From the sequence record PP856017.1: 64,000 nt of DNA. One strand, 5' to 3'. The notes under the pieces were generated by a model. That model ran no database searches, was not told where the DNA came from, and saw only the letters and a list, made by a program, of their open reading frames with translations. A program made the translations under genes and the position numbers. Below are positions 7,101-30,887 of this stretch, piece by piece (position 1 is the first letter of the stretch; the number at the start of each line of letters is the position of its first letter).

Positions 7101-8117
7101 TTAGAACACGAGTCCGTTGGAGGCACGCTTCTTGGTGCCGTCCGACAGCTTGTTTTTCACGACGCGAGCAGCTTCACGCTGTTCGTAATCGGCGACTTGC
7201 TTGCGCAGACCCTTGACGACCGTGTCGAGGAAACCGTCAGCCACCGCGAAGTGCAGCGGGAAACGCATCGTGCGATCGTCTTTCGACAGCGCAGCTTCGC
7301 GTTCGACGATGTTCATCGGCACGCCCACACGTTGGTATTCGACCGGTTGGCCGACCTTCGTGTTGTTCAGGTCCGTGTTCAGCGTTGCCACCGAGATCAG
7401 ATTGACGTCACCGACCGTCAGCTTTTCTTGATGGATCGACAGCACACCGACTTGCGGCTGATACGTGGTGACTTCGTCGAAGTGCAGCCAATGGTGCAAA
7501 TCGCGTTCGTCCAGATTCTTGTTCTGGCCGCTGTACAGCGCGGTCAGGCAAGAAATCGCCACGTGAACCTTCAGGTCGATGTCTTCGATCGAACCGTCGA
7601 CACCGTTCTGCAGGAATTGCAGAACGACCGGCTGCTCGCGAGCTTCGACGATACCTTCGTACGATTCGAGGGTGCCGATGCAGTTCTCGATGTAGTTCTT
7701 GGTGTCGTCGCCACCGATCACGAATGCGATCACCGACTTGCCTTGGTTCAGTGCTTCCGAAACGATCGACGGACCCATCACCGAACCCGAGCCGCCAGTT
7801 GCGGAATGGATCACGATGTTGAAGTCTGCGAGAGGGAAACGTTGCAGCATTTCGCCGGTGTACTTGACGATGTCTGCGCCGTTGTGGCTGCGCTTGCCGC
7901 CCGAACCGTTGGCTTCCGGCAGCTGGTAGAAGTACTCAGCCGGCACGCCGAAGGTAGATGCTTTGGAGGTGTCCATGTACACCGGGTCGACTTCGGCGTA
8001 GCCAGGATTCTGCTTGCCACGTTCGAGTTCAAAATACTTGCCGATGCCGATGCCTGCACCGCCGGTGCAGAAAATACGGATTTTGCCCAGAGTGTTGGTA
8101 TTGTTCAGTTCCGACAT
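7101..8117 (-). CDS. phuZ: PhuZ phage tubulin
   Basis: Start ATG 8117; IRIFCTGGAGIGIG (T1 loop), SATGGSGS tubulin signature, LDERD (T7-like loop), C-term ...NGLVF tail. Confidence 0.93.
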   Translation of the reverse strand: MSELNNTNTLGKIRIFCTGGAGIGIGKYFELERGKQNPGYAEVDPVYMDTSKASTFGVPAEYFYQLPEANGSGGKRSHNGADIVKYTGEMLQRFPLADFNIVIHSATGGSGSVMGPSIVSEALNQGKSVIAFVIGGDDTKNYIENCIGTLESYEGIVEAREQPVVLQFLQNGVDGSIEDIDLKVHVAISCLTALYSGQNKNLDERDLHHWLHFDEVTTYQPQVGVLSIHQEKLTVGDVNLISVATLNTDLNNTKVGQPVEYQRVGVPMNIVEREAALSKDDRTMRFPLHFAVADGFLDTVVKGLRKQVADYEQREAARVVKNKLSDGTKKRASNGLVF

Positions 8118-8187
8118 GTTCAATTCTCGCTGGTGAATTTTAAAAGATAAATCAAGATCGAAGACGTTTCGATTCTGATTCACGTTT

Positions 8188-8195
8188 GTAATATA
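8188..8195 (-). promoter_or_regulatory. phiKZ-type early (virion RNAP) promoter core TATATTAC upstream of phuZ
   Basis: Exact match to the phiKZ early-promoter consensus about 70 nt before the phuZ start. Confidence 0.65.
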
Positions 8196-8226
8196 TCGCT
8201 GAATTTCGTTTAAACAAGGACTTGAC

Positions 8227-10872: not shown

Positions 10873-12186
10873 TTATGCTGCTTTCTTCAAACGTTCATTA
10901 CCACGTGCCGCGATCTCGGTCAGGAAATCGGAAAGCGATTCAGGATTCTCCTTGAACGCATTCTCGACTTCACAGCCCGGCAAACGGATATCCGAATTCA
11001 GGAAAGCCAGGACGCCCGGATGCGGTTGCAGGATCTTGTCATCCAGTTCGTACATCAGAGTGGCGTAAGCCCAGATCTCTTTTGTCCCGATCTCATCGAT
11101 CAGATATTCGTTATTGATGCGAGACTTGCGACGCACAGCCGAATCCAGATCATCCGGTCGGTTGGTCGTCATGAGAACGATGATATTGTCCAGTCCCACA
11201 ACGCCGTCGAATGCATTCAGGAATCCCGACATGGTCAGACAGTTCATGTCCATCACCATGTCAACAAGTTCTTTCTTCTTGTTTCGATCCTTGACTGCAT
11301 TACCTGCCTGATCCACATCTTCCATCAGAACGAATGAACCGGGTTTGATCTTCGCCAATGCATCGACGAGTGATGCATTCGTGTGATCGGTCAGATCGAT
11401 GACGTATAGATCTTTCTTGAAGTACGCAGCGAGCAACTTACACAGCGTGGTCTTGCCAGTTCCAGGAGGACCGAGGAAGAGGAACGATTCCTTGTAGGTC
11501 AAACCTTTCTTACGATACCAGTCTCGCCGGTTCGTGAACTCGGTGATCTTGTTCAGGATCTCAGCTTTGATATCTTCGTTCATGCAGAACGTGGAGATAT
11601 CGCGAAGCGGGACTTTGCCCACCTGTTCCCAGCTTTTGTTGGTGGCATCGAACTTGTGAATGAACACATCGTCCGCACCACCCTTTTTCGTATTGAACAG
11701 TTCGACCAGTTCCTGGAAAGCACTTTGCTTCCAGCCGAACGTGCGGAGCATGATTTCTTCTTTCTGCTTTTCCGAACCGCCACTTTCCAGTTTGCCTTTG
11801 TTGAACCAGAAGAACCGGCGTTTGTAAAAGAAGAAATGCCAACCATCGCCCACACCGAGCCGGTACGGTTTGTAAACCGTTTCATCTGCGAACATGTCGT
11901 CGCGATACTGACGGAACATGAAGAAGCTGCGACTGAATCTGCCATAGCCTGACTGCATGAACCATTTGTCGAACATGTTGTACGCATCCAAGTTACCATC
12001 GTAACCTGCATTGTTCAACCACATCGTCACGGTCGAATAGCTGACGATGAAATCCCAAACCTTCTTGGGAACATCTTTCATGAAATACATCAAGCCACCG
12101 ACAATCGGTAAAATCATCGTGGCGAGTAACGGATTGGCCTGAGTTGCAGCATTGTACTGTCGAAACACCTCGACGATCCAATTCAT
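10873..12186 (-). CDS. BCS1-like AAA+ ATPase with N-terminal TM anchor
   Basis: TM helix about aa 18-38; WY...G..YK..FLFLGPPGTGKT Walker A; VLMEDVD Walker B; TMSGFLNAFDG, MTTNRPDDLDSAVRRKSRI (SRH/Arg finger) as in Bcs1. Confidence 0.85.
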   Translation of the reverse strand: MNWIVEVFRQYNAATQANPLLATMILPIVGGLMYFMKDVPKKVWDFIVSYSTVTMWLNNAGYDGNLDAYNMFDKWFMQSGYGRFSRSFFMFRQYRDDMFADETVYKPYRLGVGDGWHFFFYKRRFFWFNKGKLESGGSEKQKEEIMLRTFGWKQSAFQELVELFNTKKGGADDVFIHKFDATNKSWEQVGKVPLRDISTFCMNEDIKAEILNKITEFTNRRDWYRKKGLTYKESFLFLGPPGTGKTTLCKLLAAYFKKDLYVIDLTDHTNASLVDALAKIKPGSFVLMEDVDQAGNAVKDRNKKKELVDMVMDMNCLTMSGFLNAFDGVVGLDNIIVLMTTNRPDDLDSAVRRKSRINNEYLIDEIGTKEIWAYATLMYELDDKILQPHPGVLAFLNSDIRLPGCEVENAFKENPESLSDFLTEIAARGNERLKKAA

Positions 12187-12289: not shown

Positions 12290-13066
12290 TTATTTTATTT
12301 TTGAAAGATCAAGATAGAACATCATCTTGTCGTCGGGCTTCGGGAAGAAGGCCTTGATTTTTCCAAGATAGTCTTTCTTATCGCTTCCGATCACCCGGGA
12401 GTAGAAACCTACTTCCAGAAGAACGCCACTGAACGGTTCTTCCTCGATGTTCACAAGTTCCTTGCGATCCATCGTCATGCGGTAAACCATTGGGTGGAGT
12501 TTCTCCAGAACGATAACGTTCTCTTCCAGATTGCTCTTGACGATTAAAGGCAGACTGATCTTGCCACCGTGCAACTGATGGCCATTGGCGTAACCCATAC
12601 CCAGACAGATTTGGGTGTTCGCCGTGTTGTAGCCAAACTCAGCTACGATCTCACGATCTTCTTGAATGAAGCGACTCATCACGTCCATACATCCGGACAG
12701 ATCGCGACGCAAGGTTTCCCCGAATTTTTGAATGCCCACGTCGTAGGGTTTCTTCTCCACGACACGAACTTCACCTGAGATCGGCTGAGACTCGATTACA
12801 GGCTCTACAACGGGTTGATATATCTTCGGTATAGCTGCGTAGGGCTTGACCCCTGGAACCGGGTCAGGGAGGCCACCAGGGACGATCGGCAGGCAGTATT
12901 CGTCATCCCAGTCACGATCCCCAGCTGCCGCCATTTTGTGGTCTGCATAATTCTTGGATCTTTTCACGGATTTTACTCCAGGTTGAAACATTGTAAAAGG
13001 AAACTGCAGGAATTCACGATGGTTATATGTTTCTGAAACAATCTGGAATTCCATCCTTTCAAACAA
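12290..13066 (-). CDS. Hypothetical protein
   Basis: 258 aa; start uncertain (TTG 13066 or ATG 13054). Confidence 0.68.
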   Translation of the reverse strand: MFERMEFQIVSETYNHREFLQFPFTMFQPGVKSVKRSKNYADHKMAAAGDRDWDDEYCLPIVPGGLPDPVPGVKPYAAIPKIYQPVVEPVIESQPISGEVRVVEKKPYDVGIQKFGETLRRDLSGCMDVMSRFIQEDREIVAEFGYNTANTQICLGMGYANGHQLHGGKISLPLIVKSNLEENVIVLEKLHPMVYRMTMDRKELVNIEEEPFSGVLLEVGFYSRVIGSDKKDYLGKIKAFFPKPDDKMMFYLDLSKIK

Positions 13067-13085
13067 TCACAACAGCATAGTTGCA

Positions 13086-13201
13086 AGACCAAGACACCCT
13101 TACGGATGTCCTGGTTCTCGCTGGGGGGATGAATGTGGTGTGTGATCCCTCCAGAGCATGGAGGGTCATCGTTTCTTTTTTACACGCCCCCACAGGCGTG
13201 T
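13086..13201. other. Three tandem hairpins (13086-13118, 13144-13167, 13182-13201); possible structured RNA or terminator cluster
   Basis: Inverted repeats read directly; TATG at 13079-13076 after the first on the minus strand. Confidence 0.45.
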
Positions 13202-13204
13202 CAT

Positions 13205-13345
13205 TCTTTTTCTTTCTTTCTTTCGAAAAATCACTATTAATGTAATTATTGTAAATACGTTAGTATTTACAATACTAACGTTTATAATACTAATTATAAA
13301 ATTCTCTCTACAAGGTTCTGATGACATTTAAAAAATTATTTATTT
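13205..13345. repeat. AT-rich region with interlocking inverted repeats (origin-like or regulatory)
   Basis: TATTGTAAATAC-GTTA-GTATTTACAATA (13247-13274), ACGTTAGTAT-TTACA-ATACTAACGT (13257-13281), TTTATAAT-ACTA-ATTATAAA (13281-13300); TTTC repeats upstream. Confidence 0.7.
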
Positions 13346-13444
13346 TAGTACCTGGAAAGGTACCCAGGACCCTCTTAAAAAATTCCAGGAAAGCACAGAT
13401 CATCTGACATCCGTTCCACATTCTTTCGCAAAGGACGACACGAA

Positions 13445-14092
13445 ATGGGCCTCGTAGGCACGCTGCGCGAGATCGAAAAGACCTCGCCCGAAGAACTGAA
13501 TCGCTACAACCCGAACCGTCCGGTTATGATCGACGGCAGCTTGTCCGAACTCGTGACCCAGGCGCTGAACGTCGCCTACACGAAAAAGGACATGACCTCG
13601 GGTGAACCGTACTACGGTCATCAAAACGCAACGGGAGAGCCGCCACCTGGTGCTGGCAACGTCCCGAACATTCTGACGCCGGACACTCCGCGTCAGGATC
13701 CGAACATGGTCAAGCCTTCTCTCGAAGGTATGCAGCAAATGACCGAGGGTCCGATCGCAGCTGCTGCGTACGTACTCGAAGAAGCCATCAACGTGCACGA
13801 CGGTGCTGAACATCGTGTCGGTGTCGATCCGATGCTGGTCTACGCGATTCCAGAAGACAACCGCGTGCCGGAAGAGATGAACTCGAACATCGAGATGTAC
13901 GGTGATTCGGGTGCTGTCGATCCGTCGAACTTTGTGTTCGTTTATACCGACAAGTCCGATACTGTTGGTGACCTGGACTTCCGTTGCGTGGATCTCACGC
14001 AAAAAGTCAAGGACTACGAAGGCAAGGGCGCAAAGGTGTACCAGTCGCTCGAATCGTTCCTGGCCGACTACAACAACCTGCGTCGAAAATAA
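13445..14092 (+). CDS. Probable virion head protein (phiKZ-like)
   Basis: DGSLSELVTQALNVAY motif recalled from jumbo-phage structural proteins; PSLE|G matches the S/A/G-x-E prohead-protease motif. Confidence 0.6.
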   Translation: MGLVGTLREIEKTSPEELNRYNPNRPVMIDGSLSELVTQALNVAYTKKDMTSGEPYYGHQNATGEPPPGAGNVPNILTPDTPRQDPNMVKPSLEGMQQMTEGPIAAAAYVLEEAINVHDGAEHRVGVDPMLVYAIPEDNRVPEEMNSNIEMYGDSGAVDPSNFVFVYTDKSDTVGDLDFRCVDLTQKVKDYEGKGAKVYQSLESFLADYNNLRRK

Positions 14093-18868: not shown

Positions 18869-18904
18869 AGAGGATCTCCTAGCATAGGGTCATAAGGTTA
18901 GTGA

Positions 18905-18928
18905 TCGACTGGGCTTTCGCCCAGTCGA
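18905..18928 (-). terminator. Hairpin (GAAA loop) with TATG at 18894 upstream of terL
   Basis: 10-bp perfect stem TCGACTGGGC/GCCCAGTCGA. Confidence 0.7.
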
Positions 18929-18940
18929 CCTATCGCTTAA

Positions 18941-30822: not shown

Positions 30823-30846
30823 TGCTTGAAAATAATTAGAAAGCAT

Positions 30847-30877
30847 AATCTACAGGGGCTTTTGGCCCCTGTAGATT
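30847..30877 (-). terminator. Hairpin after protease gene, TATG at stem end
   Basis: AATCTACAGGGGC/GCCCCTGTAGATT 13-bp stem. Confidence 0.75.
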
Positions 30878-30887
30878 AGCATGACGA

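Follow-up and report, generated by a model that had tools for sequence, protein, structure and literature searches.

The locus examined here raises the question of what function is served by a short, extremely AT-rich island of DNA (positions 13205–13345) that lies between two genes of Burkholderia phage vB_BgluM-SURPRISE13, and that an earlier note had proposed to be a replication origin, a packaging start or an attachment site for the phage nucleus or PhuZ. SURPRISE13 is a 227,647-bp (227.6-kb) phiKZ-like jumbo phage of the genus Chiangmaivirus, which encodes a chimallin-like shell protein, a PhuZ-like tubulin and split multisubunit RNA polymerases. The literature that we examined on phiKZ-like, nucleus-forming phages (Chimalliviridae) defines neither a replication origin nor a packaging site, nor indeed any cis-acting DNA site. 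The window, meaning the whole 64,000-nucleotide stretch of DNA that was analyzed, is identical in sequence and numbering to positions 1–64000 of the SURPRISE13 record (PP856017.1), and genome-wide counts refer to the whole SURPRISE13 genome, joined from five pieces. Ten related records, representing RSL2 (two records), RSF1 (two), FLC6, FLC8, three FLC4 isolates and RsoM3USA, are ~80–82% identical to SURPRISE13 across the locus. Seven phages were aligned, namely SURPRISE13, RSL2, RSF1, FLC6, FLC8, FLC4-5C and RsoM3USA; because FLC6, FLC8 and FLC4-5C are 96–98% alike, these amount to about five independent lineages, all of them close relatives. A soil-metagenome contig that is ~90% alike was added as the eighth lineage, and was the sole relative recovered in a contig search with a 1001-nt query. 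One metagenome locus, found while more distant relatives were being sought, ends 31 nt before gene 020.

Composition and symmetry set the island apart. The earlier note had called it the most AT-rich stretch of the window, a description that extends to the entire genome: at 18% GC, against 51.7% for the genome, positions 13204–13303 are the lowest of any 100-nt span genome-wide (0.18, the next lowest being 0.23). Folding predictions and shuffled controls likewise bear out the overlapping stems that the note had described as 12 bp and 10–11 bp long. Stem 1 (13247–13274) has 12 bp and a GTTA loop, with a predicted DNA folding energy of −8.5 kcal/mol (z −7.4, equaled in 0 of 200 shuffles), and stem 2 (13257–13281) has 11 bp and a TAC loop, at −8.7 kcal/mol (z −4.8). 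The two are thus of near-equal predicted strength as DNA hairpins, no dinucleotide shuffle being as stable, and they exclude each other because positions 13257–13274 are common to both. Stem 3 (13281–13300; 8 bp, −3.7 kcal/mol) adjoins them where a third stem had been reported, but it is broken in four of the relatives. The repeat that the note had seen twice, with its complement once, is the octamer AATACTAA, present on the plus strand at 13271 and 13286 and as its complement at 13260–13267; the second direct repeat is not conserved. A direct 13-mer, TTTAYAATACTAA, has only two copies, the second of which lies within stem 3, and AATAC and GTATT half-sites alternate at 13254, 13263 and 13271. 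The TTTC-repeat run reported ahead of the stems corresponds to a 21-nt pyrimidine tract (13204–13224), TTTC-type on the plus strand and purine-rich on the minus strand, which only one other pure pyrimidine or purine tract of the genome exceeds in length. Its composition is conserved, although its exact sequence is not, and the soil-metagenome relative has an insertion in it. A separate feature of the genome's composition is that TATAAT occurs only 23 times on both strands, versus roughly 90 copies expected from base composition, which could mean either that host −10-like elements are avoided or that TA is depleted in general.

The island is also found nowhere else. Its three copies of AATACTAA are the only ones in the SURPRISE13 genome, and the octamer is likewise confined to the island in RSL2, RSF1, FLC8 and RsoM3USA, so that it marks a single site in five genomes, in each of which the reversed control word has 2–4 copies. 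Sensitive self-comparison of the genome revealed no second copy of any part of 13040–13444. A search of 185,579 bacterial genomes gave no occurrence of the 25-bp palindrome, and within a viral contig collection it was found in RSL2 and RSF1 only; no dispersed repeat family emerged from these searches. By self-comparison and k-mer counting, the island motif is a member of no promoter class in the genome, and a de novo motif search for a second promoter class common to the island yielded only terminator hairpins from the sampler and only ATATAT from the k-mer count. The more distant nucleus-forming relatives FLC9 and RP12 have no comparable island at the same position.

Within the genus, an equivalent element is present at the syntenic position and is strongly conserved, contrary to the lack of conservation that the earlier note had named as evidence against a functional site. 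In sliding 40-nt spans, 13240–13339 is 91–94% conserved, which is the level of the best-conserved coding stretches nearby even though this DNA is non-coding, and which is far above the neutral rate in the relatives; the core at 13246–13330 is almost invariant among the seven aligned phages and the soil-metagenome contig. Throughout 13246–13284, which holds stems 1 and 2, the only positions that vary among the seven phages are 13251 (G>A) and 13270 (C>T), both in RSL2. These are exact pairing partners in stem 1 and so constitute a compensatory pair; two substitutions would fall on one pair with complementary bases by chance about once in a hundred. In the soil-metagenome contig, stems 1 and 2 are unchanged, and one alone (13285 T>A) of its 35 differences over 13021–13412 lies inside 13240–13345. 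A 2-nt deletion (13287–13288) has destroyed stem 3 and the second copy of TTTAYAATACTAA in RSL2, FLC6, FLC8 and FLC4-5C, and the stem 3 region also varies at 13285 (T>A) and 13296 (A>C). Farther right, 13289–13322 differs only at 13296, 13320 and 13321 in the seven phages and includes an asymmetric block, TAAAATTCTCTCTACAAGGTTCT (13297–13319), that is identical in all seven. As judged from the alignment, strong constraint is limited to the two interlocked palindromes and this block. Uniqueness, AT-richness, conservation and the compensatory palindrome favor a single special cis-acting site, and nothing found in the sequence is specific to replication or packaging.

The genes on either side are divergent, as the earlier note had stated, with gene 019 on the minus strand and gene 020 on the plus strand (start at 13445). 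SURPRISE13 gene 019 is annotated from an ATG at 13054, while all of the relatives start at the GTG equivalent to 12967, which is preceded by a good GGAG-type ribosome site. The start of gene 019 is most likely GTG 12967, and the annotated 29-codon N-terminus of SURPRISE13_019 is probably wrong; therefore, the true intergenic region should span approximately 12968–13444 (~477 bases), wider than annotated, and this whole divergent, non-coding stretch can be regarded as the control region. A coding gene across the island was ruled out, since open frames on both strands shift with indels and no start codon is conserved, although one relative annotates a gene there despite the frame shifts. No tRNA or tmRNA was found in the region, and Rfam gave no covariance-model match at gathering score (best E ~1). 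Among genes 018–025, which specify a BCS1-like AAA ATPase, two acetyltransferases, a homologue of the phiKZ gp32 head protein and products without assignment, we found no recognizable DNA-binding, initiator or small-terminase gene. The ATPase gene, 018 (10873–12186), carries a BCS1 N-terminal domain and an AAA domain (Pfam E 5e-11 and 5e-17). The gp32 homologue belongs to a rightward operon of genes 020–025, beyond which lies the large terminase gene 026, 3.4 kb from the island. Gene 020 itself is genus-specific, a search of the ESM Atlas gave nothing for its product, and the predicted folds of the gene 019 and 020 products (pLDDT 33–35) are unusable.

A promoter class that recurs in the genome provides a frame for reading the flanks of the island. 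This class, here called P1, was found as the common element of the genome's other AT-rich spots and consists of a T-rich stretch, cag-ACATATATWAC, a spacer of ~4 nt and GTGA. There are ~14 good copies, on the minus strand only, identified by regular-expression search because a weight matrix for the motif was too noisy; those in the window are at 8117–8200, 10795, 13024, 30817, 51510 and 59941. Each copy has a minus-strand gene downstream and often the terminator hairpin of the preceding gene upstream, and the genes served include those for the chimallin shell protein, the PhuZ tubulin and a non-virion RNA polymerase subunit. The copy for gene 019 (13024–13037, minus strand) has the T-rich stretch, cag-ACATATAAC, 4 nt and GTGA, is conserved in all of the relatives and sits inside the annotated 019 coding sequence of SURPRISE13. 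P1 is also present in the distant relative FLC9. The early promoters of phiKZ-like phages, which are used by the virion polymerase, have an AT-rich element at about −10 with a T-rich part upstream (PMC7598289, PMC8244752), and the sequence of P1 fits this description.

To the left of the island lie three hairpins, of which the outermost is the most informative. Hairpin A (13083–13121, minus strand) is a terminator-like structure with an 18-bp covarying stem and a four-base loop, GUAA in SURPRISE13. When it is read as minus-strand RNA, none of 126 base-pair cells is broken across the seven phages and six pairs are doubly changed, and five positions with G-U pairs on the minus strand would be A-C mismatches on the plus strand. 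The minus-strand loops are GUAA, GAAA or GCAA, of the GNRA type, except in RSF1 (GUCA). The form of hairpin A matches that of the genome's own terminator hairpins, which a motif sampler found at dozens of gene ends, and it stands ~45 nt ahead of the gene 019 promoter, an order of terminator and then promoter that recurs elsewhere in the genome. Because it is kept on the minus strand, has the form of a terminator and occupies this position, we read hairpin A as the likely end of a minus-strand transcript that contains no gene. A promoter for that RNA would therefore be needed between 13121 and ~13345, where there is no gene. In general, the terminator hairpins of SURPRISE13 have long, perfect, GC-rich stems and four-base loops (UUCG, GAAA), many without a clear U-run (e.g. 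18869–18940 and 30840–30880).

Hairpin A is followed toward the island by a linker (13121–13138; CTGGGGGGATGAATGTGG on the plus strand) that is C-rich on the minus strand and predicted to be single-stranded. The linker is identical in six of the seven phages, RSF1 having one substitution and a 1-nt insertion, and within it GGGGATGAATGTGG shows no variant among the seven and has no second copy in the genome. Hairpin B (13145–13167, minus strand) has an invariant, GC-rich 7-bp stem, CCCTCCA/TGGAGGG, plus one extra pair, G-U when read from the minus strand but A-C from the plus strand. The strand of hairpin C (13182–13201) is ambiguous: its 7-bp stem shows one compensatory change, C-G to T-A, in five relatives, and the T-rich tract that follows it on the plus strand gives it the score of an intrinsic terminator there. 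Over 13075–13330 as a whole, predicted RNA folding is stronger on the minus strand (z −7.6) than on the plus strand (z −4.95). A covariance model of hairpins A–C found nothing in FLC9 or RP12; in the SURPRISE13 genome it gave a weak plus-strand match (E 0.05) between genes 174 and 175 (163299–163405), which probably reflects just hairpins. FLC9 and RP12 have at this locus a divergent, non-coding gap of 600–700 bp with several terminator-like hairpins, ahead of the operon for the gp32 homologue. A large non-coding hub may have occupied this locus since before the genus arose, despite the lack of sequence conservation.

On the right of the island, a candidate early-type promoter (13323–13345, minus strand) points leftward into it from a position just left of hairpin D. 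This element is degenerate in SURPRISE13, where it reads ATAAATAAT with GTCA in place of GTGA, but the P1 pattern matches at the site in five of the seven phages (RSL2, FLC8, RsoM3USA, FLC6 and FLC4-5C) and RSF1 has a near match, TATATAAT; GTGA stands ~5 nt farther from the motif than it does in standard P1. Read on the minus strand, the invariant block at 13297–13319 lies 3′ of this element and bears a loose resemblance to the conserved sequence downstream in P1. Hairpin D (13348–13363) has a 5–6-bp stem with compensatory changes and likely belongs to the leader of gene 020, two G-U cells weakly favoring the plus strand, and an invariant 25-nt block in the same leader (13393–13417, plus strand) occurs once in the genome. 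Pairing of 13102–13110 or 13131–13138 with the gene 020 leader was considered and dropped, as it is not conserved in the relatives. Gene 020 has no P1 promoter of its own and needs a start site in or beside the island.

The best explanation of these features is that the island forms the core of a genus-specific, single-copy transcription control region. The flanks provide sequence evidence of minus-strand RNA running outward from or through the island, and indicate that the gene 020 operon must start beside it; therefore, a role in transcription is the best-supported part of any model. More specifically, we tentatively favor a leftward, non-coding transcription unit for which the island supplies both the AU-rich front and the site of control. 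Such a unit would start at or just right of the island, and its transcript would cross the AU-rich palindromes, the purine-rich tract, the two GC hairpins and the invariant C-rich linker and would end at hairpin A (13121 down to 13083), with its 18-bp, mostly GNRA-capped stem, before the early promoter of gene 019. If the promoter at 13323–13345 is used, transcription of the island would be early and the island would form the AU-rich front of a ~245-nt non-coding RNA, whose first transcribed stretch would be the block at 13297–13319. The gene 020–025 operon would start rightward, back to back with this unit. The palindromes could then act either as two alternative RNA hairpins or as the target of a factor that binds their particular sequence and governs the output of both units. 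We infer the transcript, its start sites and any switch or function of this kind from several signs in the sequence: hairpin A is kept in all seven phages only as minus-strand RNA and has the form of the genome's own terminators, which elsewhere stand just upstream of P1; the P1 pattern is aimed into the island in most of the phages; the minus strand has the stronger predicted fold; the sole substitutions within 13246–13284 are the compensatory pair in stem 1; and gene 020 requires a start in or beside the island. In addition, small RNAs from 5′ leaders and intergenic regions are documented in the related jumbo phages 201phi2-1 and phiKZ (PMC11512511). Several observations sit less comfortably with the leftward unit. 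The promoter-like element is degenerate in SURPRISE13, the island motif falls in no promoter class of the genome, and no DNA-binding regulator is recognizable nearby; hairpins made of A-U pairs alone are weak, a sequence that is invariant even in its loops suggests that what is recognized is DNA, not an RNA structure, and the resemblance of hairpin C and its T-run to a plus-strand terminator is left unexplained by this model.

The extreme composition of the island, the invariance of its loops and stems, its single-copy status and the adjacent purine/pyrimidine tract ask for more than an ordinary promoter, and a transcription-activated replication origin is a possible, if rather unlikely, way of accounting for them. 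In the T4 origins oriF(uvsY) and oriG(34) and in the T7 primary origin, a phage promoter is followed by an AT-rich unwinding stretch. By analogy, an early promoter here would fire leftward through the island, which would serve as an easily melted unwinding element, and the purine-rich RNA would hybridize stably with the pyrimidine tract and prime leading-strand synthesis, while the GC hairpins would stop or pause the transcript. Several features speak for this role: 18% GC over 100 nt, the extreme of the genome, makes the island easily melted, it is single-copy in five genomes, its strong conservation includes a compensatory pair, most relatives have a promoter-like element directly upstream of it with respect to the proposed transcript, the second-longest purine/pyrimidine tract lies just downstream, and the examined literature defines no origin for the Chimalliviridae. 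However, the inflection in GC skew that the earlier note had suggested looking for does not exist at 13 kb, either in bulk or at third codon positions, the skew instead following gene strand; neither a DnaA box (within 2 mismatches) nor an IHF site was found at the island, and no replication gene is adjacent. Moreover, the covarying hairpins and the invariant linker exceed the needs of a primer RNA, the corresponding gaps of FLC9 and RP12, long and rich in hairpins, contain no comparable island, and the promoter is degenerate in SURPRISE13. The full proposal, that 13081–13345 is the replication origin of Chiangmaivirus, with a virion-polymerase promoter transcribing through the palindromes and the RNA priming at the pyrimidine tract, is likewise rather unlikely, although it would provide the first origin defined in cis for a nucleus-forming phage. 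It is compatible with, rather than opposed to, the leftward transcription unit: because a promoter followed by AT-rich DNA is itself the layout of an origin in T4 and T7, the two readings are inseparable on sequence. An origin of the iteron or initiator type finds no support, as the island has two direct 13-mers only, the second lost in four relatives, rather than at least three conserved repeats, lacks a DnaA box and is flanked by genes, 019 and 020, that belong to no replication family.

Less probable than an origin, but able to explain the invariance of the loops alongside that of the stems, is a DNA site for a phage-encoded protein that has no role as RNA, for example one that serves segregation or nucleus anchoring, or a repressor operator in which three AATAC half-sites alternate at intervals of ~8.5 bp. 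The alternation of AATAC and GTATT at 13254, 13263 and 13271 and the uniqueness of the element agree with such a site, which we nevertheless consider improbable given that no candidate binding protein was identified (the 019 and 020 folds being unusable), that the island contains no centromere-type repeat array and that the element is absent from FLC9 and RP12, the other nucleus-forming phages examined. Two further possibilities seem very unlikely. A start site for headful packaging, at which terminase would recognize the unique palindrome and make the first cut in the concatemer, would suit the uniqueness of the sequence, its proximity to the large terminase gene 026 (3.4 kb) and its place at the head of an operon that includes a head protein homologue, and the termini of SURPRISE13 are unconfirmed (PMC11898562). 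Yet genes 019–025 include no recognizable small terminase, strand-specific RNA hairpins on both flanks would not be expected of a packaging site, and the start of the genome record was set by alignment to RSF1 rather than by mapped ends (PMC11898562). We attach similarly little weight to the idea that TACAAT and TATAAT hexamers constitute sigma-70 promoters from which host RNA polymerase transcribes one or both flanks. The phages RSL2 and RSF1 produce no progeny in rifampicin (PMC5468394), a sensitivity that host promoters would fit; the island holds three −10-like hexamers, a promoter scan gave one minus-strand match at 9 of 12 positions, and elsewhere in the genome TATAAT is scarce, as the count given above shows. 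Promoter-like sites are, however, no more numerous than in shuffled sequence, the best −35-like hexamers are spaced by 11–13 nt rather than 16–18 nt, and the hexamers themselves are not kept, TATAAT becoming TATAAC after the 2-nt deletion in relatives, AATAAT becoming AATAAA in RsoM3USA and TTGTAA becoming TTATAA in RSL2.

The island is the best-marked non-coding site in the genome, being unique, extreme in composition and kept nearly letter for letter, with a palindrome maintained through a paired change, and the region around it offers a precise 250-base target in a phage group without defined cis sites in the literature examined. Because the region seems to be copied into structured non-coding RNA, the island should be at least a transcription control site. 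Even if it is a control region only, a genus-wide early promoter motif and a likely structured non-coding RNA will aid the annotation of phages for biocontrol of crop pathogens.

Comparison with known systems helps to place both the control region and the proposed leftward transcription unit. Like the early promoters of phiKZ-like phages (PMC7598289, PMC8244752), P1 combines an AT-rich element at ~−10 with a T-rich stretch farther upstream and recurs before early-type genes, and it is linked to this locus by the copy for gene 019 and, in the relatives, by the variant that is aimed at the island; its conserved downstream part (GTGA...) is not described in those studies. The island differs from these promoters in that it contains no P1 motif and no recurring −10-type motif of this class, its own motif being unique and its 13-mer being found nowhere else. 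The small RNAs of 201phi2-1 and phiKZ (PMC11512511) resemble the unit proposed here as short, non-coding units with a promoter and a nearby terminator hairpin that are conserved within a phage group, although there is no sequence or Rfam match between them and the unit here would contain the AT-richest stretch of its genome. Attenuators and RNA switches with mutually exclusive hairpins share with the island two overlapping stems of equal strength and a U-rich run that follows the second on the plus strand, but the stems here are almost purely A-U, and no leader peptide, ligand-binding fold or known family is associated with them. Finally, the T4 oriF and oriG and T7 primary origins have no sequence similarity to the island, which is palindromic and invariant in sequence rather than merely AT-rich, has a promoter-like element that is degenerate in SURPRISE13 and is followed by three conserved hairpins; what it has in common with these origins is a single-copy, intergenic arrangement in which a promoter-like element lies directly upstream of the most meltable stretch of the genome, which its transcript would cross.
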